Positions 320-62,710 of a stretch of 64,000 nucleotides of DNA are shown here, piece by piece. Positions within the stretch are counted from its first letter, which is position 1. Each line of letters starts with the position of its first letter. A model generated the notes under the pieces. That model did no database searches. It was not told the origin of the DNA and saw only the letters and a list, made by a program, of their open reading frames with translations. A program made the position numbers and the translations under genes. The DNA comes from Hyaloraphidium curvatum SAG 235-1 (Eukaryota > Fungi > Monoblepharomycota), in the NCBI GenBank assembly GCA_025558095.1, contig JAIVFI010000043.1, positions 1-64,000 of the forward strand, in the 5' to 3' direction.

Positions 320-3300
320 GAGTGCTCCAAAAGCGTCGCCGTCTACTACCAGCGGCTATTGAATACAAGACGCATACATCCATCCTCCCGACATCCTCCA
401 AATATCCGACTCATGCGATTGCTACTGTTACTTTACGTGCGTTTTAGCCCCTCGATCTGTCACTCTTCCCCCATCCCTCCCCCACATCCCTCCCCCCCTC
501 TACCGGCTCTTGGCCTTGACCGTGACGGTCTTGGTCGCGGTGACCTTGATCGTCTTGGTCGACTTGATGGTGATCTTGGTCGTGCGCACGAGCGTGGTCG
601 TGACCTTGCCGACGGTCTTGGTCGCGGTCGACACCTTGGTTGTCGTCACGGGGAAGGAGAGGACGCTCGTGGAGACGCTCGTGGAGACGCGGGTGACCGT
701 GGTCGGAACCGAGACCGTGCTCGTGCTGAAGACAGTGATGGTGGCGAGCGAGGTCGTGCTGGTGAGGGTGACGGGGGGTGCGTTGGAGACCGAGACCGAG
801 GTGACGGTCGACGTGACGGCCGGCAGCGAGATCGTCGAGGTCACGGTCGAAATGGCCGTCGTGGTGAGTGTCGAAGTCACGGCTGCGATCACGCCGGGCT
901 TGAAGGAGAGGCACCACGAGTCGACGTAGATGGACGTGGCGCCGTCGTTGACGTTGCACGAGAGCGTCCACGTGGTAGCGGAGCCGTTGAAGGCCAGCCC
1001 CGAGAGTGGCGTCTGCGGGCGGTAGCGAGTCCCCAGGCATGCCTCCTCGACCGTCAGGTTGCCGTAGTTCGGCGAATCCAGGTAGCGGAGCACGGCGGAG
1101 TCGTCGAAAATGAGTGGAGCCCCTGCGAGGCGTTCGCGGCACTTGGTCTCGTTGTAGGGCGATTCGAAGAGCAGGCTCTCGGGGGCAGGGCCCCCATTGA
1201 GGGAGTTGCCGTTGGAAACAGTCACGAAGATGGACCCGAGGGACTTGGTGTCGAAGTAAAGCTCCACGTCCACGCCGCCGACGGGGCCGACATTGGCCAC
1301 GTCGATGTTGAAGTTCTGCGGCGTGTTGCGATAAGTGAGGTCCTTCTGCACCGAGCCGCAGTAGCGCATGACGCCGGGCACGGCAGGCGTGGCGGTGGCC
1401 TGCAAGGATGGGGAGGAAGGCAGCACGTCAGACCTGGCAATGCAAAGCGCGGGCACGGTGTCCTTACCCAGGTCCTCGTGGTCGAAGGTGTGGCACTGGT
1501 AGTCGTGGTTCTCGTGCGAAGACCTTCCAAGGAGATGCACCACGAGTCGATATGCACGGCGGGCATGTTTTCGTCCAAACCCCAGACCCCCAGCTCCAGC
1601 TTCGAAAGCCCAAACTCCAGCTGCCGCGGTGCCAGGTCGTCCAGGATGAAAATGTCTCCAGACGGCCGATAGCGCGTCCCGAGGCAGGCGTCCTCGACCG
1701 TAGGAGGCTCCGCCGAGCCGTAGAGGTACCGGGACGGTGCGTCGTCGTCGAAGATGATGGGCAGTCCCGCGGGGCGGTCGCGGCAGATGGTGTCGTTGTA
1801 ACGCTCGGCAAATGGCCCTGTAAACAGCTCATGCCAGTAGTTCCTGTCGGGGTCGGTGACGACCATCATGAGCCCCGCTACGCTTGGGCTGTCGAAGTAG
1901 ACCTCCACGTCCACGCCGCCGAAGGGTTCCGAAGGGAGGTCGATGCCGAAGTACTGGGGCGTGTTGGCCCAGTCAAAGTCGCTCTGGATCTGCATGCAGT
2001 AGCGTCGGCCCCCTCCAGTGAGCGGCGTCGCGGTGGCCTGGATGTGGGGGGCCCCTGTGAGCAGGTGAGCGCCGGGACGCGTGCGCACGGCCGTACCCAG
2101 GTCCGGGTCGTCGTGGGGGTCGCAGTCGTGGTCGTCTGGGTCGTTTCGGTCACGGAGCCGTTGGCGACGGAGAGCTTGTACTCGAGCCAGGACCGCGCCG
2201 AGGACAGCCTCGCAAAGGTGCTCTGCCCGATGTCGCAGGTGTCCCAATACCAGCTCGCCAATGCGACCTCCTCCAGGATCCCGTCGGCGTTGAACTGCAG
2301 CAGTGGGCTTCCAGAGTCGCCGATGCAGTGGGACTTGCCCGGGCCGCCGGCGCAGAGCCAGCTCGGGTGGAAGGTCTCCGCGGTGAAGTTCACCAGGGAG
2401 GGGTCTCCTTCCAGGGTGGAAGCCTCGTTGTACCGGTCCATGCACTCGGCGATCGTTAGGGCCGTGAGGTTGCCCTGTTGCAGGTACTGGGGGGGAAGGT
2501 GGGGTTAGTCGAGGGGCGCAGCAGGCCGACGCGGGTGGTCCCGGAACGAACCCTAGGTTCTCCGCGCTGGACGCCATCAAGGAAAAAGTCACTCTCGGCC
2601 ATGCCGAAACCGATCGCGGTCACGACCGAGCCGGGCAGCGGATCCTCGGCGCGGAAGTTGATGGGGAGCACTGCTGGACTCCCTTCACCGGTCACGGTGG
2701 GCTCCGAGAGGTGCAGCACGGCAAAATCGTTGACGGTGACGCCCGGGAGGGGGGAGTCCACAAGGAAATCGGGATGTAACTCGAAGCTCTTGACGGGGAA
2801 CGAAAATCCCCCTTCTTCCTCGACGGTCTTGCTGCGGTTGCGGCGGCCGGTCTCGATGAAGCCGGTGAGGCCGTACATACGCCAGAAGTCGACGCAGAGG
2901 CCTGCATAGGGGTGAGGGAACGCGTGTCAGAAGGTGTATCCGTGCCGCGAAGCGGACGGAGCCCCGTGGCCTGCCTCCCTACCTGCGGTGAGAGCCATCC
3001 TCGGGGCCACCAGGGCCGCCCCGCAGACAAACACGTTTGGGCCGCCAAAGGGGATGGTGACATACAGCATCGCGTGGAAGGGGTACTTGGAGTCCGATTC
3101 GACCGTCGTGCCGCCGATGATGGCCGGCGGAGGCGAACCACCGGCGGTGCCGATGCGCTGCGCGGCCGGCCGGGCGGAGGCCGCCGAGGGGCGCGGCCCG
3201 CTGGTGCGGTTGAGGAACGCGGCCTTCAGGATCTTGAGCTCCCGGAGGTACGTGGCGGGGAGCCGGGAGCCGAGCTGGGCACGCGGGGCGGCGGCATCGG

Positions 3301-3750
3301 CCCCGCACAGGAGGGCGAGCGCGGCGAGCGCGGCGAGCGCGGCCACGGCGAGCGCGGCGTGGCGGATCATGCTTGCGGCGCGGCGGAGATCTCGGCGGCG
3401 GGAGCGGGTGGCGACGGCCGGTTTTAGTTCCCGTCAGGCAGAAATCTGGACTTTCAGGGAAGGTTCTTTTCGGGTCCAGCGGCTGAAGGGGTGATGACCC
3501 GAGGTCCCCGCTTCGCCGCAACGCCGCGCCCCTTGCGCCAAACTCAGCTGGATATTTCAGGAGGTCGATCGCCGGCCACAGGGCCATCGACCGGCGGCGG
3601 TGGTGTGCGGACACGGCCGGCAGCGAAAACGGCGGGGCCGGTTCCAGCCAGGAGAGTGTTCCATGGCTTTCGCCCCGCGGGCCGACATGACCGCCCGCCC
3701 GGGCCGCCGAACGTTCTTTCGAACTGCATCTGGGCGCTCCGGCATGGCCG
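320..3750. repeat. Left arm of a diverged inverted duplication (partner about 6490-9825)
   Basis: Similarity covers CDS, intron positions, 3' flank (ttgtattca-tagccgc...tggtagt) and promoter motifs (gaaagaacgttcgg, tggctgga). Confidence 0.85.
500..3370 (-). CDS. Secreted S1 (trypsin/chymotrypsin) protease homologue, copy A: catalytic His replaced by Leu; two P-domain-like repeats and a Thr/Lys-rich tail; 4 introns
   Basis: Signal peptide MIRHAALAVAALAALAALALLCG; mature start IIGG; CGAALVAPRMALTA|GLC across intron 2902-2982; NDFAVL; GDSGSP. Introns lie at the same positions as in paralog 6819-9674. Confidence 0.88.
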
Positions 3751-4320
3751 GCGGTCCTCTTGACCGCGTCTTAGGCGCCCCAGATGGGGCGCCTTCGGCG
3801 ATTGTGGGCGTCTGCACCGCCAGCGATGCCAGGGACGGGTGGCAAACGGCCGATGGTCCGGCCGTTTTCCCGGAGGGCCGCTCCTCCTCGACGCGCTAAG
3901 CATCGGGCGCCGGTCGGACGCCCAGCACGTCCCGCGTTGCCGCCACTTTCTCCTCGAGCTCGCAGAACCTGTGCTTCGGGGTTCGTAGCCGCACGCAACC
4001 TGCGGCGATCGGCACAGCCCCGCTCGACCGCTCCCATCGCGGCGGTACTGCGGGCTCCCGCCCACAGCTGCCGCCCATGGGGACCCGTGCCAGCCCCAGG
4101 ATACGTCGTCTGGCGTCCCGGGCACCAGGGCAGCACCGCGATCCCGATTCCGCTGGCCGTCCCCGATCCGCCCGGACTGCTGGCTTCTTCGTCGGGTCCG
4201 CGTCGTGGACCGCCGGCTGGAGGACGGAAGGAGAAACGGGGCATGGATTCGGAGCACGAGAGCACGATCCAAAGCGCGACCACGGGGTCATCTTCGCCCG
4301 TCGCCTCTTCGGGCCCGGCA

Positions 4321-6489: not shown

Positions 6490-9400
6490 TGCCGGATTTG
6501 ATGCAGACGCCCTCCGGAAAGAACGTTCGGGCGGGCCCGGCGGGCGGTCCGGCCCAGCCCTGGAACATTCTGCTGGCTGGAGCGGCCCGCCAACGCGTTC
6601 GCTGGCCAGTGCCCGGACCGCGACCACCGACGGCCGGAAGGTCGGTCCCCAGTGGCTGACGATGCCGAGATCTGCCCCGGCAGGCGGCGTGGCGATCGGA
6701 GGTGAATCATCGTCCCCAGCCTCCGGAGGACCCGAAGGAGGAAATCCCTGGAAGTCGAGATTTCTGCTGAACAGGACTCACCGAATCGGCCCCATCGCCG
6801 CGCGCCATCGCCGCAAACATGGTCTGCCGCGCCCTGCTGGCGCTGGCCGCGCTCCTCGCGCTCGCCGTCGCGTCCGGCGCCGACGTCCCCGCCGGGCGCT
6901 TCCGCGGCTCCCGGCTGCCCGCCACGTACCTCAACGAGCTGCGCGCCGCCAAGGCCGAGTTCCGCAACCGCACCGCCAAGCTGCGCCCCTCCGCGGCCGC
7001 CGGGAGACCGGGCGCGCTGCGCGTCGGATCCGCCGGTGGTTCGCCCCCGCCGGCAATCATCGGCGGCGCCACCGTCGAATCGACCTCCAAGTACCCCTTC
7101 TACGCGATGCTCCTCGTGCACTTTGGCGAGGACAGCCCCAGGTACTTCGTCTGCGGGGCTTCGATGATCGGGCCGAGGCTCGCGCTCACGGCAGGTGGGT
7201 CGAGGGCGTGCTCCTTCGCTGTGCGGCGGGGGAACGATCTGACTTCCGCTCCCGCGCAGCCCACTGCGTTTACTTCTGGGCTTCCGAGGGCATCGTCGGC
7301 GGCGTCATCGAGACCGGCCGCCGCAACCGCAGCAAGACCGTCGAGGAGGAAGGCGGATGGGCCTTCGAGGTCGAGAGCTTCGTGATGCATCCCGACTACG
7401 ACGACTATGCGACCACCAACGACTTTGCCCTGCTGCGCCTCAAGGAACCCTTCGTGACCGGCACCAAGGACATCGCGCTGCTCCCCGTCAACCTCGGCCC
7501 GGGCGACCCGGCGCCCGGGTCGGGCGTGACCGCGATCGGCCTGGGGATCGCGGAAAGCGACTTTTTCGTCGATGAGACAATGCGTGGAACGCCCAGGGTT
7601 CGTCCTGCGTTCGGTTCGCCGCCGGGCTCTGTGCCTGAAACCGCTTCCCGCCACACAGTATCTTCAGGAGGTCAACATCACGGCCCCATCGAACGCCGAG
7701 TGCATCGCCGCCACCAACGAGTACGGCATAGTGGCCTTCCCCCCTCCCGAGTGGGACTGGGTCAACATGACCCAGGAGGACTTCAGCCCCACGTGGCTCT
7801 GCGCCGGAGGTCCGGGCAAGTCGCCTTGCCAGGGGGACTCTGGTGGTCCCCTGCTGCTGTACACGGCCGACGGCAACGTCTCGGTGGTCGGGCTCGTGAG
7901 CTGGGGCTTCCTCGGCTGCAGCGCCCCGTACGGATTCTTTTCCCGCATTTCCGCGGCGCAATCCTTCCTGGAGTGGCCGATCCTGGTCGCCAACGGTTCC
8001 GTGACCGAAACGACCCAGACGACCACGACCGCGACCCCCACGACGACCCGCACTTGGGTACGGCCGTGACCCCGCGCCCCGCCGCTTCCCCGCTCACCCC
8101 GTCTTCCCCGCATCCAGGCAACCGCTACGCCTCTCACACCCGGGGGCCGGCGCTACTGCGCACAGGTCCAGCAGGACTTTGACTACGGCAACACCCCCCA
8201 GTTTTTCGGCATCGATCTCCCCAACGATACCTTTGGCGGCGTGGACGTGGAGGTCTACTTCGACAGCCCCAGCATCTCGGGGCTCTCGATGGCCCTCACC
8301 GACCCCGACTGGTTCTACTGGACCACCCTGTTCGACGCGCCCAACATCATCGACGGCAACGAGACCATCTGCCGCGACCGCCCCGCCGGATTGCCCATCA
8401 TCTTCGACGACGACGCCCCGTACGGGTACGTCGACGGCTCGGCCGAGTCCCTGACGGTCGGGGAGGCCTGCCTCGGGACGCGGTACCGGCCCTTCCAGGG
8501 CGATGGTTCCTTGGACTCGCTGGTGCAGCAGCAGCAGGAGTCCGGGCTCTCGACGCTCCTGCTGGGGGTCAACATCTTCGATTTCCAGAGCACCATGCAC
8601 GTCGACTCGTGGTGCGTCTCCTTCGAGGGCCCCCGCACGACCACGACATCTGCGTCCGCCACGCCTTCGACCACGAGGACCTGGGTGAGTGTTCCGCGGC
8701 GGGCCCCGAGGCGCCGAATCTGACGTGCAGCCTTCCTCCCACCCGTGCAGGCCACCGCCACGCCGGCCGTGCCAGGCGTCATGCGGTACTGCAGCTCGGC
8801 GCAGAAGGACCTCACCTACCGCAGCACGCCCGCGAACCTCAACATCGAGGTGCCCAACGTCGGTCCCGTCGGCGGCGTGGACGTGGAGCTCTACTTCGAC
8901 GCCAACTCCCTCAACGGAATCTACATGTCGGTCTACAACGGCAACTCGTTCAACGGCGGGCCTTCCGCCGAGACCCAGCTCTTCAACTCGCCCTCCAACG
9001 AGACCAAGTGCGGCCAGCGCCTCGCCGGGAACCCCCTCATCTTCGACGACTCGGCCGCGCTCCAGTACCTGGATTACCCGGACAACGATAACCTGACGGT
9101 CGCGGAGGCGTGCCTGGGGACGCGCTACCGCGCGCAGACGCCCCTCTCGGTGCTGGCGTTCAACGGCTCGGCCACCACGTGGACGCTCTACTGCCACATC
9201 TACAGCGGCATGACCTCCGTCTTCGTCGACTCGTGGTGCCTCTCCTTCAAGCCCGGCGTGATCGCAGCCGTGACTTCGACGCTCACCACGACGGCCATTT
9301 CGACCGTGACCTCGGTCTCGACAGTCTCGCTCCCGGCCGTCACCTCGACCGTCACCTCGACCTCGGTTTCGGTCTCGAACGCACCCCCCGTCACCCTCAC

Positions 9401-9825
9401 CAGCACGACCTCGCTCGCCGCCATCACTGTCTTCAGCACGAGCACGGTGTCGGTGCCGACCACGGTCACGACCGTCTCGACGAGCGTCTCCACGAGCGTC
9501 TCCACGAGCGTGGTCTCATTCCCCGTGACGACCACCAAGGTGTCGACCGCGACCAAGACCGTCGGCAAGGTCACGACCACGCTCGTGCGCACGACCAAGA
9601 TCACGATCAAGTCGACCAAGACGGTCAAGGTTACCGCGACCAAGACCGTCACGTTCAAGGCCAAGAGGCGGTAGAGGGAGGGAGGGAGTGGAGAGACGGA
9701 CGGGGAAAAGGCAACCACAGTATTGTAACACTATCACTAGCATATTCGGGGAATGACGAACGGAGTTTTGTATTCAGTAGCCGCCTTTTTGGTAGTGGAA
9801 GCCGGCAGCCTTTGGACTACTCGTA
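6490..9825. repeat. Right arm of the inverted duplication
   Basis: Reverse-complement similarity to 320-3750. Confidence 0.85.
6819..9674 (+). CDS. Secreted S1 serine protease, copy B (intact triad), with two P-domain-like repeats and a Thr/Lys-rich tail; 4 introns
   Basis: Signal peptide; IIGG; TAAHC across intron 7195-7259; NDFALL; GKSPCQGDSGGP; GLVSWG. Confidence 0.92.
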
Positions 9826-57992: not shown

Positions 57993-59234
57993 TCATCCAC
58001 CTGCCCGGGCATCCATCACCATGTCCTGCTCGGCTTCTCCCGCCCCCCTGCCCCGTTCTGCCCACACCTCCCCCGCCGCCCTCCCAACCTCGTCCGCCCA
58101 CCGCTCGACCCCCCAACCCTCCCCCTCGATCACCCTGTCCACCGTATCCCTGCGCGCTGCCGACGCCCGCGCATACAGCGCGTCGTAGTGGTCCAGCAGC
58201 ACCCCCGCGGCCTCCTCCCTCCTGCCCTCCCCGAGCATCCGCAGCACGTCCGCCGTGCGATCCCCGCCCAGCCGCCTCGCGATCCGCCGCACCGCGTCCG
58301 AGAGGGCAGCGGGGTCGGCACCGCCGTACTCGTCGACCGCCCTCCTCAGCCGCTCCTCCCGGGGCACCTCGAGCACGATCCGCGGGGCGCACAGGAGCGA
58401 CGCGTAGATCCCCGCCGGCAGCGTCGCCCTCCCTATGCTCCTGTTCTCGTGCTCCGCCAAAATGGGCCCCGGCCTCGGATCGGCGAGCAGAGCGTCGACC
58501 TCCCCCGACAGGCGGTTCTCAAAATCCTCCGTGGTCGCGAATTCGCCCTGCGGCGCGGGGTGGAGCACCCCTCCCCCCGCGGCTTCGAGCGCCGCCCGCT
58601 GTCGGTCCGTGAACTTTGGAACGGGGTGCAGCGGGACGTGCGGCACGGGGAACAGGCCCCCGAACGCGCTGCCCCTGTGCCCTGCCAGCCCCTCGAGGTC
58701 CAGCACCTTGCTCTCCCTGGCAGCGAGGCACCGCAACACCTCGGACTTGCCCGATCCCGTCTTGCCCGCGATAACGACCAGCGGCACCCCGTCCGCCAAG
58801 CGTTCCAGAACGTGCCGCCTGTAGGCCGCGTAGCCGCCGGCCAGCACGGCGCACGGCACGCCCAGCAGCTGGAAAAGAAAGGCAACGGCCATCGACCGCA
58901 TCCCGCCGCGGGCGCAATGCACGCGCACCCGTTCGCCGGGCTTCAGTCCCCGCCCGACGGCGGCAGCGGCGGTCCCCAAAGCCGACATCCGCGGCCCGAC
59001 CCTCTCCAAAGCGAGCAGCACCGCCCTTTCTCTCCCGGCGCTCTTGTAAAGTGTCCCCACTTCCGCGCGGTCCGCGTCCGGGAACAGCGGCAGCGAGGCG
59101 GCGCCCGGGATCCGCGCGCGCGCGTGTTCGCTGGGGCTGCGGGCGTCCAGGAGGGGCCCCGGATGGGCGAGGAAGAGGGACGGCGGGAGGGGCAGCGGGC
59201 TGGGAGGGCCGGGTGGGAGCTTGGACGGGTGCAT
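57993..59234 (-). CDS. selU: tRNA 2-selenouridine(34) synthase-like protein (rhodanese + P-loop); intronless
   Basis: LDARSPSE...IPGAASLPL...RAEVGTLYK; CARGGMRS; GGYAAYR; GKTGSGKS; LDLEGLAGHRGSAFG; FEN; IGRATLP; HYDALY. All are MnmH/SelU/YbbB hallmarks. Confidence 0.9.
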   Translation of the reverse strand: MHPSKLPPGPPSPLPLPPSLFLAHPGPLLDARSPSEHARARIPGAASLPLFPDADRAEVGTLYKSAGRERAVLLALERVGPRMSALGTAAAAVGRGLKPGERVRVHCARGGMRSMAVAFLFQLLGVPCAVLAGGYAAYRRHVLERLADGVPLVVIAGKTGSGKSEVLRCLAARESKVLDLEGLAGHRGSAFGGLFPVPHVPLHPVPKFTDRQRAALEAAGGGVLHPAPQGEFATTEDFENRLSGEVDALLADPRPGPILAEHENRSIGRATLPAGIYASLLCAPRIVLEVPREERLRRAVDEYGGADPAALSDAVRRIARRLGGDRTADVLRMLGEGRREEAAGVLLDHYDALYARASAARRDTVDRVIEGEGWGVERWADEVGRAAGEVWAERGRGAGEAEQDMVMDARAGG

Positions 59235-59829
59235 CGCGGAAGGAGGAGGGCAAGAGGCCCGGCACCACAGCTAGTGGATCGACGGAGTGGACGCTAGGGA
59301 GTAAACAGTCGGGCGGCGGACCTGGCGCCAGCGACCCGGCGCGACCATCGAACGATCAGTCCTCTACTCCCGGGGCTATTCACCCCTCCACCGCTTGATC
59401 ACCCTACACCATCTACGTCCATTACATCAGCGAGAGAGAAAAGCTGAATGCCAGCAGGCACGGGAAGATGACTCTGCACATAGCAAGCGATCATGATCCG
59501 ACGGCAAGTGGAAGAGAGGAGGAGGATGCCAAGATCCGGATGCTGACAGCCGTCGACGGAAGCGCGGTTGTAGCGGAGCAGGGCGAACACGGATCCGGCT
59601 TTCGCTCCGGGTGCTGTGGATCTACACAGTCACGCGGGGACGTGCTAGCGGGAAGCAAAACGCCAGAGGCAGGGAACAGTTTTGGGGACAATGATTCGGC
59701 AAGTCGACTGTTGGATTCGCACTCATATGCCCGCCGCCGACGCGACGACGTCGCGCTTGCGTTGTGCCGCGTCCGCGTCCCCCCTGTTCGCCGCGTTCCT
59801 GGGGCCGTCCGCCGCTGGTTTTGGCCTGA

Positions 59830-62449
59830 GCCGGCTCGGCCCTGGCCATCGTGGGCATTGGCGGGACCGCCCAGCGCGGACCACTTCTTCTCTACTGGGG
59901 CCCCAGCGGGATCACGATCGGACGGCAAGACGAGACCGAATTCGGCGAGGTCGGAAGCCGAAATCAGTTGTATCAGCGAAGCACCTTCAGGAAACGGCAG
60001 TACCACTGCGAACCAGCGGGAGACGCACCGCCGCCCCGAGTGAGCATGGCCCTCAGCTGAGGACTGCGCGGGAGGTCAGAATGTATGCATCCACGAGGGG
60101 TTGCGCGCACCCACATCTGCTGCGAACAATTCCCGCTCCGAATAGATTGTACTCGTCCCTGCTCACGAACTCGTAGAACAGGCGGCTATTTGTCTACAAT
60201 TCCGGCACTTGGTCGCTCGGACTCTCGGGGATCCCGCCGATGAGTGATGCCGCCTGCACGTCCAAGACCTTTTGCGTTACCGTCGGAGCCCGGTCGACCA
60301 TACGGCTGTTCGACGGCGTCAGCTGGTCCGCCAAAGCATTCCCAAGTGCCGATGAGGGCACCTTTGCTGTGGTGGCGGACGTCGGCGACGGGCTCTTTTG
60401 GCTGTTCAAGAACAACGTCCCCGAAAGCGGATCCGGCGAGGGGCGCATTTGGTTCTGGATCCGGAGCAACGACACGTTCGGCGTAGTTCCGCAGTCCGTG
60501 GTCGGCAACTTCTCCAGCCTCAACAACATGTAGGTGACGCTGGGGCGAGACGATCTCGGAGACCTCCGTTGACGTCTGCACATCTGCAGCAACTGTCCCA
60601 CCGCCACCGACTGCATCGCCGTCGGAACCCAGGATTCCGGCTTTTCCAATGCCGTGGCTCGGTGGCGCGGCCCCGATCCCCTATCCTGGACGCGCGACGA
60701 CATCAACGGCTCGGTTGTCAGGGGCCTGTTCCTGGCAACTGGGTGCAACGCGGCGTGTTCAGACCGCGGCATGGACGATCCGTGCTGCCAGTGCATCGCC
60801 GTCGGATCCCGCGGGGTGGCTGCTATCGAGCCCGCGGTGGTCGACACGGCGTGCCTGCCGGCGCCCATCAAGACCACCAAGCGGGTGCCGGCCAAGACTA
60901 CCAAACGAGTCACGCGAAAGACGACGAAGCGGCGCACGACGACAAAGGCTCCGGCGCCGGCGCTTCAGACTTCGGCGGTGATCGTGTTGGATCTTGGATC
61001 GACCACCGTTCGTGCGGGGCTTGCTGTGGGTTGCACTCCGTTCGCGATCAGGATTGGAAGCTTACCCTATCTGTCAGGGCGACGGCACTCCGCAGATCAC
61101 TTTCCCGAACCTAGTCGCGAGGCTCGCCAACGGCAGCGTCCTGGTCGGCGAGCAGGCCCGTGCCTCCTCCGCCGCGAGATCTCCCCTCACGGACGGCACG
61201 ATCACCGACGTCGACGGCCTCGTGGCGGTCTCTTCGCACGCCCTCCGCCAGCTCGGAGCCACCAACCTGCGGCTCGTCCCCAACCGGCTCGTCTTCGTGG
61301 CGTCGCCGCGCAACACGCAGGCCGTGCGCAGGCTCTTTGCCGCCGCAGCGGCGCGTGCGCAGCGCCCACCCGGGCTCTTTGTTTCCCAGACCTCGCTGAC
61401 GGCGCCGTTCCTAACGGGATCAGGTGGGTTCTGCCTTCTGGAAGCCATCGCCGGCATACTGACTCCCGCGGTCCAGTCTCGGACGGCTCCCAGCTAATGT
61501 CGCTCGAATTCGGCACCTCGGCCTCGGCCGTCCCCGTCTTCCGCCGCGGCGGCCGCACCTACACCTTCCCCTCGGCGGTCCGCACCATGCGGCTCACGTC
61601 CTCGGCGATCGACGCCTACATCGCACGGCAACTCCGGATCACGACTGCGCAGGCGGAGGAGCTCAAATTGATCGCGGGGGTGTTCTTCGTCGCAGTGCCG
61701 GATGCGGGCGCCGCGGCGGGGACCAGGGCGGTGGTGGCGAGGCTGGGGAACGGGACGAGGGTGACGGTGCCTGGGACGCTGCGCTGGATGGCGCCAGAGG
61801 TGGGTTTGCGCGATTCGGATGCGGCGATCGCTTCTGAACTGGCTCGCGTCTATTGCAGTCGATCTTCCGCCCCTCGGCGATCGGCCGCACCGGTCCCGGT
61901 TTCGCCGACATCGCCCAGCAGGCCGTCGCCGCGACCCCGTCGTGGTTCCGTGGCAACGCCAGCACCATGACCCTCGTGGTGTCGGGCGGCACGACACTCT
62001 TCCGCGGGTTCGCGGGGCTGCTCCGCGCCGAGATCGGCCGGCGCGCACCGTGGAACACGGTCCCCTCCAACACCGGGGGCGGGCTGGCTAACTTCACCAA
62101 CGTGCTGATGGCGCCTGGGAGCACGACAGCCGCGTTCCGGGGAGCGAGCGCGCTCGGATGTGGGTGGCTGCGCAAGGCAGCGTCCGTGGCGCGTTACTGA
62201 TCTCATCTTTTTTCAGTCTTGAGCGGCACCCTGGGCCCTGCCTACGTCACCAGGCAGGCCTTCACCACGGGTGGCGCGGCCGCGTTCGCAAGTGGGTGGC
62301 TTCCTTCCCGATGATACGGAGTGATTCAGATGCTGATGTTCGCCCTCCTGCCAGCACGCTGCTTGGCCCCGGAGGGCACCATCTGCGCCTGCGACAATGC
62401 ACAATCGAGCGCGTGCGCGGTGTCGGGGCTGCAATGCGTCTGTCGGTGA
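59830..62449 (+). CDS. Fusion protein: Cys-containing propeller-like repeats + Thr/Lys/Arg linker + divergent actin-fold domain + Cys-rich tail (5' end unresolved)
   Basis: Introns 60040-60176 (tentative), 60530-60589, 61026-61077, 61424-61476, 61800-61858, 62160-62216 and 62292-62354 keep one reading frame. Actin motifs are collinear along the whole domain. Confidence 0.8.
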
Positions 62450-62710
62450 TGGGGAACACGCAAAAGGGCTGTTGAAACACGCAGACAGCACCCTCAAGGA
62501 GAATGTCTGTGTCTCGTGTCCAATGGACCCAAGAGCAGCTCGGATGCCGGCCAATCCAATCCTTACTTCCCTATCCGGCTGTCCGGTCATGCATGCGTCA
62601 CTCGGCGCGACGCGGCCGACTGCGGCCGGGGCCTTGCGTGCGTCGGATGCGTCATTGCGGGCCCAAACAAACATTCAGGTTCCGACGCCACTCGCCCGCG
62701 CCTACCCGTC

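Follow-up and report, generated by a model that had tools for sequence, protein, structure and literature searches.

A third locus of a propeller–actin fusion family in Hyaloraphidium curvatum, with family features that point to the secretory pathway

Near the end of the window (the whole 64,000-nucleotide stretch of Hyaloraphidium curvatum SAG 235-1 DNA that was analysed), the original prediction placed, at 59830-62449, a full actin-fold domain embedded in a Cys-rich, extracellular-looking protein. To our knowledge, the actins and Arps described so far work in the cytosol or the nucleus, and we know of no described actin relative with a secretion signal. The locus thus raises the question of whether the fusion is real and whether a true actin fold may work outside the cytosol. 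We consider it probable, at about 0.6, that the locus is the third paralog of a family of propeller-linker-actin-six-Cys proteins that are extracytosolic by design, in which the actin part would serve as a non-polymerising clamp that still closes on nucleotide, and that the 5' end of the copy in the window has been remodelled.

The gene in the window (hereafter the window copy) was traced as seven in-phase exons over 60183-62449 on the plus strand, separated by six GT..AG introns of 52-63 nt, five of which have the donor GTGGGT. Its 640 in-phase codons contained no stop and no frameshift. The features of this model were as follows.

60183-60529, plus strand: exon 1 (RLFVYNSGTW...SLNN), propeller blades with one C-x5-C pair; traceable extent only, upstream limit uncertain
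60530-60589, plus strand: intron 1, GTAGGT..CAG, 60 nt, with an in-frame TAG; predicted by homology
60590-61025, plus strand: exon 2, a single uninterrupted exon with Cys-rich repeats, T/K/R-rich linker and VIVLDLGSTTVRAGLA
60590-60854, plus strand: first part of exon 2, last propeller blades (INCPTATDCIAVG..., CNAACSDRGMDDPCCQCIAVG, ACLP)
60855-60974, plus strand: middle of exon 2, T/K/R-rich linker with three KTTKR units
60975-61025, plus strand: end of exon 2, first actin strand and phosphate-1 loop (AVIVLDLGSTTVRAGLA)
61026-61077, plus strand: intron 2, GTGGGT..CAG, 52 nt; splicing seen
61078-61423, plus strand: exon 3, actin subdomains 1 and 2, shortened D-loop, Q137 equivalent (VSQTS)
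61424-61476, plus strand: intron 3, 53 nt; splicing seen, GT..AG joint
61477-61799, plus strand: exon 4, phosphate-2 loop (SLEFGTSASAVPVF), subdomain 3 and part of subdomain 4
61800-61858, plus strand: intron 4, 59 nt; joint not seen among transcript contigs
61859-62159, plus strand: exon 5, subdomain 4 into 3, adenosine motif VVSGGTTLF, inserted loop with NFT
62160-62216, plus strand: intron 5, 57 nt; splicing seen, GT..AG joint
62217-62291, plus strand: exon 6, C-terminal helices of the actin fold
62292-62354, plus strand: intron 6, 63 nt; splicing seen, GT..AG joint
62355-62449, plus strand: exon 7, six-Cys tail (RCLAPEGTICACDNAQSSACAVSGLQCVCR) and TGA stop

Exon 2 alone holds the last Cys-rich repeats, the T/K/R-rich linker and the first actin strand in one unbroken reading frame; therefore, the propeller–actin fusion is real and lies in one gene, in agreement with the original prediction of a true fusion rather than two adjacent genes. 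The peptides quoted there were all recovered in the claimed order and frames by three-frame translation, and the sequons NGS, NGT, NAS and NFT, the loop LEFGTS and the Cys tail (six Cys) were all present. The start at 59830 did not hold, as nothing upstream of about 60183 was convincingly homologous to the two paralogs described below. Removal of intron 1 restores the conserved motif N-INCPTxTDC, and the earliest in-frame ATG of exon 1 lies at 60240. A DNA-level repeat was looked for in the linker, and none was found. An antisense ORF of 240 codons was rejected as a gene, being the mirror frame of a GC-rich coding exon.

The window copy is transcribed and spliced. Transcript contigs contained GT..AG joints for introns 3, 5 and 6 at exactly the predicted bases, and the 17-nt loose end of a contig at 61026 is identical to 61079-61095, at the start of exon 3, so that four introns (2, 3, 5 and 6) were spliced as predicted. 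For intron 4, the inner 36 nt lay outside every listed contig (contigs stop at 61812 and restart at 61849). One contig spans 60362 through exon 2 into exon 3 and is unbroken over 60362-61026. The sole contig crossing intron 1 retains it, and no RNA joint between exons 1 and 2 was found among the transcript contigs.

By sequence and structural model, the actin part is a genuine member of the actin/Arp family with the four-subdomain fold. In an exon-by-exon search, the matches of the window copy to the Pfam Actin profile (PF00022; curated cut-off 27 bits) were colinear, with exon 3 covering profile positions 22-137 (E 1.3e-4, 21.2 bits) and exon 5 positions 285-381 (E 1.3e-3, 17.8 bits), each below the cut-off alone; exon 4 matched the related FtsA model of the ASKHA superfamily (E 1.3e-3). 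The paralog KAI9027814.1 scored 86.4 bits (E 2e-24), and a genome scan with PF00022 gave 43+32 and 43+37 bits at the two paralog loci. KAI9027814.1, whose actin part is 55-60% identical to that of the window copy, stood in for the window protein in the fold modelling. The AF2 model of its residues 388-798 had a pLDDT of 85.8 and a pTM of 0.85, and Foldseek ranked actins at the top (E 3e-24, TMt 0.87, rmsd 2.5 Å, about 390 aligned columns). The claim of a full actin fold was thus borne out by the profile matches and, on the paralog model, by the structural ranking.

Comparison with solved structures using phmmer returned Arp1 as the best sequence match (E 1e-20, 77 bits, about 310 aligned residues), followed by actins at 6e-17 to 1e-11. 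Arp1/centractin has the same four-subdomain fold; however, it is cytosolic, polymerises into a short filament, and has no signal peptide, propeller or Cys tail. Orthology of the fusion module to Arp1 is unlikely. A search of the same genome gave no closer Arp. Identity to actins was about 21% in structural alignments, and the motifs AG.AGD..P...FPN, RW..PE.IFRP and GG[ST]TLF are common to the module and conventional actin. The module differs from conventional actin in having Ala in place of H161, [DE]FGx[ST] instead of DSGDG in the phosphate-2 loop, an inserted loop of 11 residues carrying NFT, no Cys, and fused domains.

The nucleotide site retains the phosphate-1 loop DLGSTTVR, the adenosine motif GG[ST]TLF and the Q137 equivalent, within [SG]Q[TP]. 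The phosphate-2 loop had been described as degenerate; its canonical DxGxG is indeed altered, but the form [LV]-[DE]-F-G-x-[ST] is conserved in all family members, including a metagenome fragment, which argues for remodelling rather than decay. Because the phosphate-1 loop, the Q137 equivalent, the family-conserved phosphate-2 loop and GG[ST]T are kept, the module probably closes on a nucleotide and cation, judging from its sequence. The predicted shortening of the D-loop was confirmed: this region (FPNL VARLANGS VLVGEQA) is 8-10 residues shorter than that of actin, and the longer form occurs in P0006 and P0007 of alignment A3. Since the D-loop is cut down, actin-like polymerisation of the fusion module appears unlikely. 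The module may instead clamp or bind a ligand, with the propeller positioning it on a glycan or wall ligand.

The Cys-rich module was also present as predicted, and its repeats are better described as blades: on its structural model, the N-terminal part is a beta-propeller. Foldseek matched it to Ycf48, GH74 and sema domains with a probability of 1.00; VIA gave Z scores of 13-15 over about 180-200 residues to many propellers, with WD40 and other propellers tied; and the ESM Atlas search returned actinobacterial propellers of the Rax2-C/PSII_BNR type (TM 0.55, feature score 0.92). The model is confident only at residues of about 140-300, the first 110 residues being poorly modelled. The repeat C-x5-C-x-AVG...G..W resembles the blades of bacterial secreted propellers, and the model matches Ycf48, BNR, GH74 and Rax2-C propellers; however, the domain differs from Ycf48/BNR-type propellers in that searches of its pieces against Pfam and NCBIfam gave no family at E up to 10, including PF14870 and its relatives.

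The same architecture was found at two further loci of H. curvatum (C8 and C24), each annotated as a single protein, which answers the search for paralogs called for with the original prediction. These are KAI9027814.1 (798 aa, hypothetical protein DFJ74DRAFT_751279) and an 830-aa 'actin-domain-containing protein'. Both share the Cys pattern, the six-Cys tail and the remodelled nucleotide loops with the window copy, which is 40% identical to them in the propeller part and 44-60% in the actin part (exon 1, 40% to both over 116 aa; exons 4 and 5, 60% and 59% to the C8 paralog). Unlike the window copy, both paralogs have a signal-peptide-like leader, about 140 extra N-terminal residues and a linker that is not T/K/R-rich. 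Introns 1, 2 and 4 of the window copy are absent in the paralogs, whereas the paralog intron after ILSDT is absent in the window copy.

Among 1.84 billion protein representatives, family members were limited to the two GenBank paralogs and one metagenome contig; the contig is 2314 nt long and comes from JGI sample 3300059473. No paper on propeller–actin fusion genes and no described family with such an architecture was found in the literature, consistent with the earlier statement that none is known. Two further scans of metagenome contigs for relatives, with an alignment and with a single protein as query, gave none. A protein search with KAI9027814.1, whole and as residues 395-798, returned only the two paralogs; for the C8 paralog's read-through ORF of 433 aa, a word-indexed protein search gave no match. 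The searches that returned both paralogs gave no protein of 238-1400 aa for the window locus, which appears to be an unannotated third paralog of a small H. curvatum family missing from the public protein set. Comparison of the loci by tblastx was dominated by GC-rich low-complexity matches. The two recent paralogs, C8 and C24, are under purifying selection, with a dN/dS of 0.16 in both domains. Between the window copy and C8, dN was 0.48 and dS about 1, which is saturated and hence uninformative; exons 1 and 3 had a high dN/dS in this comparison.

Several features of the family point away from the cytosol. The leaders of the paralogs, MAGRYAALACAVLAGLAAAAEAA followed by RW and MATRFAPLGYVLLAALAAVADA followed by VKW, are the sole strongly hydrophobic stretches; as judged by hydropathy and the A-x-A rule only, they have a basic n-region, a hydrophobic core of 14-15 residues and an A-x-A site, and they are joined in frame by splicing straight onto the first propeller strand. 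Cys is absent from the 370-aa actin part, whereas 43 actin-like proteins have a median of 6 and never fewer than 2; the flanking modules have 20 conserved Cys, an even count arranged in C-x5-C pairs and clusters. Both paralogs keep the six-Cys tail C-terminal to the actin part, and inserted loops of the actin module carry conserved N-x-S/T sites. In addition, each of the two paralogs has an actin-like gene head-to-head with it, and these neighbours likewise begin with signal-peptide-like leaders. In each family product, a single polypeptide would combine a Cys-rich beta-propeller of the disulfide type, a linker, a complete actin/Arp-type domain and a C-terminal knot of six Cys, a design suited to the secretory pathway or the cell exterior. 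A secretory-pathway location of the family is plausible. An actin-like ATPase fold that works outside the cell or in the secretory pathway has precedents in the GDA1/CD39 NTPDases and ER BiP/Hsp70; they are other ASKHA families to which no sequence match was found, and the fusion module belongs to the actin/Arp family proper. No secreted actin-family protein was found in the literature searched. The earlier idea of a secreted or cell-wall protein gains only indirect support, from the two paralog leaders, the Cys-free actin domain and the conserved sequons; in the window copy itself, no signal peptide was found.

The 5' end of the window copy contained the following features.

59729-59840, plus strand: start of a signal-peptide-like ORF (MPAADATTSRLRCAASASPLFAAFLGPSAAGFG...), in a frame that differs from the downstream relic; possible decayed leader exon, uncertain
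59846-59893, plus strand, frame 2: weak relic of the first propeller strand, WPSWALAGPPSADHFF compared with W-TNIAVAGVPSVDNLV in the paralogs
60064-60114, minus strand: antisense intron, GTGGGT...CAG; joint 60063>60115, CT..AC on the plus strand
60306-60361, minus strand: second antisense intron, inside sense exon 1; joint 60305>60362, CT..AC on the plus strand

The relic strand (tblastn, 11/27 identical, E 0.01 against a 1.2-kb subject) is not significant alone, and RNA contig depth is 0 over 59508-59761, which covers the ATG at 59729. The ORF at 59729 is the only signal-peptide-like one; in frame or within RNA coverage, the window copy gave no signal peptide, and its start codon could not be assigned. 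An upstream exon joined in phase with exon 1 through a 143-nt intron (60040-60182, GTGAGC..AACAG) was not adopted; it has no RNA support, overlaps the antisense intron and shows about 3/26 identities to a paralog blade. The window copy lacks the approximately 140 N-terminal residues of the paralogs, and paralog residues of about 40-160 have no counterpart. Since intron 1 is retained and two antisense introns lie in or near exon 1, the RNA over exon 1 may be antisense rather than sense. The 5' end would have been remodelled, with no intact counterpart of the leader and the first 140 or so residues. Given this remodelling and the spliced antisense RNA that overlaps exon 1, the window copy may not be secreted, or it may be entering decay.

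These observations raise the alternative that the window copy, although still transcribed, has lost its N-terminal part and is becoming a pseudogene, from which the secreted propeller–actin protein is no longer made, while the family is perhaps functional. The missing counterpart of paralog residues 40-160, the out-of-frame first strand, the signal-peptide-like ORF beyond RNA coverage, the retained intron 1, the antisense RNA, the missing database protein and the high dN/dS of exons 1 and 3 against C8 all agree with it. However, the codons have stayed open despite only 40-60% identity to the paralogs, each of the six introns has an intact pair of splice sites, with four pairs in use, and the copy retains all motifs of the nucleotide site as well as the Cys pairing pattern and the six-Cys tail, which leads us to regard ongoing pseudogenization as somewhat unlikely. 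A very doubtful variant is that the actin part is expressed alone from a start in exon 2 (e.g., ATG 60771 or the linker), with the upstream Cys-rich exons untranslated or antisense. The lack of an RNA joint between exons 1 and 2 suits this variant, and antisense RNA together with a sense mRNA that starts in exon 2 could account for the contig over 60362-61026; against it, the frame is unbroken from repeats through linker to actin strand in one exon, and exon 1 and the first part of exon 2 are conserved at the protein level with paralogs annotated as fusions.

The remaining alternatives concern the family. The leaders could be gene-model artefacts or membrane anchors and the protein an odd intracellular Arp with a propeller, as might be expected from the location of described actins and Arps, from Arp1 as the nearest solved sequence, from the heuristic leader calls and from the commonness of propellers as intracellular modules too. 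We consider this unlikely, as both paralogs have kept the leader, which splicing joins in frame to their first propeller strand, the Cys-free actin module stands against 20 conserved paired Cys in its flanks, the N-x-S/T sites are conserved on inserted loops, and the head-to-head neighbours have similar leaders. It is hard to credit that the module is an ecto-nucleotidase derived from actin and analogous in function to the extracellular GDA1/CD39 enzymes: the extracytosolic signs of the family fit, and a likeness to apyrase conserved regions 1 and 4 may be seen in the loops DLGSTT and [DE]FGx[ST]A, but the fold and PDB sequence matches are to actin and Arp, and the equivalent of the catalytic-site H161 of actin is Ala. 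An NTPDase identity was rejected, with no GDA1_CD39 (PF01150) among the Pfam matches at E up to 10 (window exons) or 1 (KAI9027814.1).

The reading that we prefer, an extracytosolic propeller–actin family with the window copy as its third, 5'-remodelled member, may extend further. On a more tentative view, which we hold with less than even confidence, Hyaloraphidium has moved actin/Arp members (the three fusions and the head-to-head leader-bearing actins) into the secretory pathway or exterior, possibly as a luminal or wall-associated heteromeric assembly. If true, Hyaloraphidium would have the first extracytosolic actin-family system. Finding a true actin fold downstream of a signal peptide, in a protein that is disulfide-rich and probably glycosylated, would extend the range of uses of this fold, and the fusion family would offer a natural Cys-free, non-polymerising actin scaffold for study. 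It also provides a clean example of domain fusion specific to one lineage, in which introns have been gained and lost rapidly between paralogs.

Three-frame translation of 59400-62500 recovered all of the peptides quoted in the original prediction, in actin order. Exon bounds were set by reading frames and splice signals, with an arithmetic check, and gave the following model.

Exons of the window copy, each placed by frames and splice signals
60183-60529, forward strand, E1, 5' limit open
60590-61025, forward strand, E2
61078-61423, forward strand, E3
61477-61799, forward strand, E4
61859-62159, forward strand, E5
62217-62291, forward strand, E6
62355-62449, forward strand, E7, ending in TGA

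Every junction in E1-E7 was in phase, with zero internal stops, and the six introns were all GT..AG introns of 52-63 nt, five of them with the donor GTGGGT. E2 alone runs from the last Cys-rich repeats through the T/K/R-rich linker to the first strand of the actin part, including the phosphate-1 loop, confirming that the two parts form a true fusion. In the linker (60855-60974), the unit KTTKR(V/R) occurs three times and supplies dibasic KR/RR sites, which, judged from sequence, might serve in Kex2-type processing or as a basic localization signal; the paralog linker has no such units. The body comprises 640 in-phase codons with 40-60% identity to the paralogs, and translation from the earliest in-frame ATG (60240) of the ORF as traced would give a leaderless protein of 621 aa. 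In protein searches that returned both paralogs, nothing between 238 and 1400 aa corresponded to this locus; the gene therefore seems to be unannotated in the public protein set.

Transcription was examined in one public RNA run (X1, Logan contigs) containing 61% of the sampled words, which behaves as a transcriptome because Illumina adapters and spliced joints are present. Its contigs showed GT..AG joints at the predicted bases for introns 3, 5, and 6, and splicing of intron 2 was shown by a 17-nt overhang matching the start of E3. For intron 4, no joint was seen in these contigs and the interior lacked coverage, and intron 1 was kept in the sole contig crossing it. That contig contains two further joints, 60064-60114 and 60306-60361, which read CT..AC on the forward strand; taken on the minus strand, both are canonical introns, the first (GTGGGT...CAG) with the species-typical donor. 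It follows that E1 is overlapped by a spliced antisense RNA and that this contig, being unstranded, merges both strands. The antisense transcript (59776-60362, minus strand) overlaps E1 as well as the sequence upstream, and yielded no convincing ORF. The run also contains a visible paralog transcript, revealed by loose ends at 60977 and 61009.

When the window exons were searched singly, E3 matched the Pfam Actin profile at 22-137 (E 1.3e-4), E4 the related FtsA/ASKHA model (E 1.3e-3), and E5 the Actin profile at 285-381 (E 1.3e-3); these matches were colinear, each individually under the 27-bit cut-off. The database paralog P0001 (GenBank KAI9027814.1, a hypothetical protein of H. curvatum), 44-60% identical to the window copy in the actin part, served as the full-length proxy. 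Its actin part scored 86.4 bits against Pfam Actin (E 2e-24), and phmmer against PDB chains placed Arp1/centractin on top (E 1e-20, 77 bits), with actins behind (6e-17 to 1e-11). An AlphaFold2 model of P0001 residues 388-798, built on an alignment of the family and 36 actin-like sequences, reached pLDDT 85.8 and pTM 0.85, and Foldseek returned actins as its top matches (E 3e-24, TMt 0.87, rmsd 2.5 Å, about 390 columns, 21% identity). The actin fold first read from the DNA was thus found with both Pfam and Foldseek, and the assignment is solid for the family.

The module retains the motifs AG.AGDG.P...FPN and RW..PE.IFRP, a glutamine corresponding to Q137 of actin, and GG[ST]TLF as the adenosine motif; the phosphate-1 loop, DLGSTTVR, is identical in all three copies. 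The phosphate-2 loop, originally described as degenerate, is instead remodelled, since the form [LV]-[DE]-F-G-x-[ST] is conserved across the family, including a metagenome fragment. The equivalent of H161 is Ala. The D-loop is indeed shortened, by 8-10 residues, and the last strand is preceded by an inserted 11-residue loop with a conserved NFT sequon. All copies share three conserved N-x-S/T sites within the actin part. These features suggest a module that probably still binds nucleotide and probably lacks the actin-type longitudinal filament contact.

The N-terminal part had no family match in Pfam or NCBIfam and contains five to six occurrences of the repeat C-x5-C-x-AVG...G..W. Its AlphaFold2 model, from a shallow alignment, had a mean pLDDT of 58.5 and was confident only at residues ~140-300. 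For this region, Foldseek returned Ycf48, GH74 xyloglucanases, and sema domains; VIA gave Z 13-15 to many propellers; and the ESM Atlas pointed to actinobacterial Rax2-C/DUF2510/PSII_BNR propellers by shape (TM 0.55) and to the same families by features (0.92). All structure comparisons of the model are consistent with a β-propeller. The C-terminus is a conserved, poorly modelled six-Cys tail (CACDNAQSSACAVSGLQCVCR in the window copy).

The genome (31.9 Mb, 55 contigs) holds two further loci of the same layout, on contigs C8 (P0001) and C24 (830 aa, annotated as "actin-domain-containing protein"), and the N-domain is absent from the rest of it. When 1.84 billion representatives were searched exhaustively by HMMER with A2, the profile of the actin part, the matches were the 798-aa P0001 (E 1e-158), fragments P0002 (5.8e-54) and P0004 (8.6e-22), and P0003, a tandem actin protein (E 3.9e-22); other matches, at E 2e-12 or weaker, were at the level of ordinary actin-family proteins. 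P0002 (259-858) and P0004 (880-1221) lie on one 2314-nt metagenome contig (JGI/IMG sample 3300059473), called as two prokaryote-style genes and probably split by an intron. With about 48-50% identity over the actin part, this relative was the sole one outside the genome in this search; the family is restricted to Hyaloraphidium and one environmental relative. Introns at 60530, 61026, and 61800 occur only in the window copy, the C8 and C24 copies being continuous there, and an intron after ILSDT is present in both paralogs where the window copy is continuous. These shifting positions indicate recent gain or loss of very uniform 52-63-nt GTGGGT introns.

The paralogs begin with leaders, MAGRYAALACAVLAGLAAAAEAA followed by RW and MATRFAPLGYVLLAALAAVADA followed by VKW, each combining a hydrophobic core with a single basic residue and an A-x-A site. 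In both, the leader is spliced straight onto the first propeller strand and is the sole strongly hydrophobic stretch in the protein. The actin part (370 aa) contains no Cys, whereas 43 actin-like proteins (340-430 aa) from the same search have at least 2 each (median 6); 20 conserved Cys, arranged in pairs and clusters, lie in the flanking modules. Between the C8 and C24 paralogs, which are recent, dN was 0.064 and dS 0.40 (ratio 0.16) in both domains. Together with the conserved sequons, these features point to a secretory-pathway or extracellular protein. In both paralogs, an actin gene with a signal-peptide-like leader lies head-to-head with the fusion gene.

Head-to-head actin genes beside the paralogs
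C8:300236-302014 (locus L007, about 2237-4015), minus strand, near-canonical actin, start MARRHQRHSRVARIARAAALAAGALAAISGARGQ
C24:60869-62619 (locus L006, about 7870-9620), forward strand, more divergent actin, start MAGPSVWSVVVRVLAAAVAALAVLGNAAAQ

The secreted reading is well motivated for the family, if unproven, but unsupported for the window copy. No such neighbor lies beside the latter, and no counterpart of paralog residues ~40-160 was found upstream of E1 in the window. A weak relic of the first propeller strand lies upstream of E1 (59846-59893, frame 2); a signal-peptide-like ORF from ATG 59729 is in a different frame from it and within a stretch of zero RNA depth. In our reading, the body of the window gene is preserved intact and its 5' end has been remodelled; the product of this copy may not be secreted, or the copy may be starting to decay.

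Farther upstream, a 3501-nt transcript contig of very high depth (696) matched the intergenic sequence at 59354-59489 with 7 mismatches and 1 gap before continuing into unrelated sequence; it probably stems from either a repeated element or a relative that is highly expressed from another genomic site. An intronless 413-aa ORF (57993-59234, minus strand), which we take to resemble tRNA 2-selenouridine synthase (rhodanese and P-loop), has its mRNA 5' end near 59308, where the contig terminates in adapter.

For an actin/Arp-family domain, the architecture of these fusion proteins is unprecedented, and their location is probably unprecedented too.
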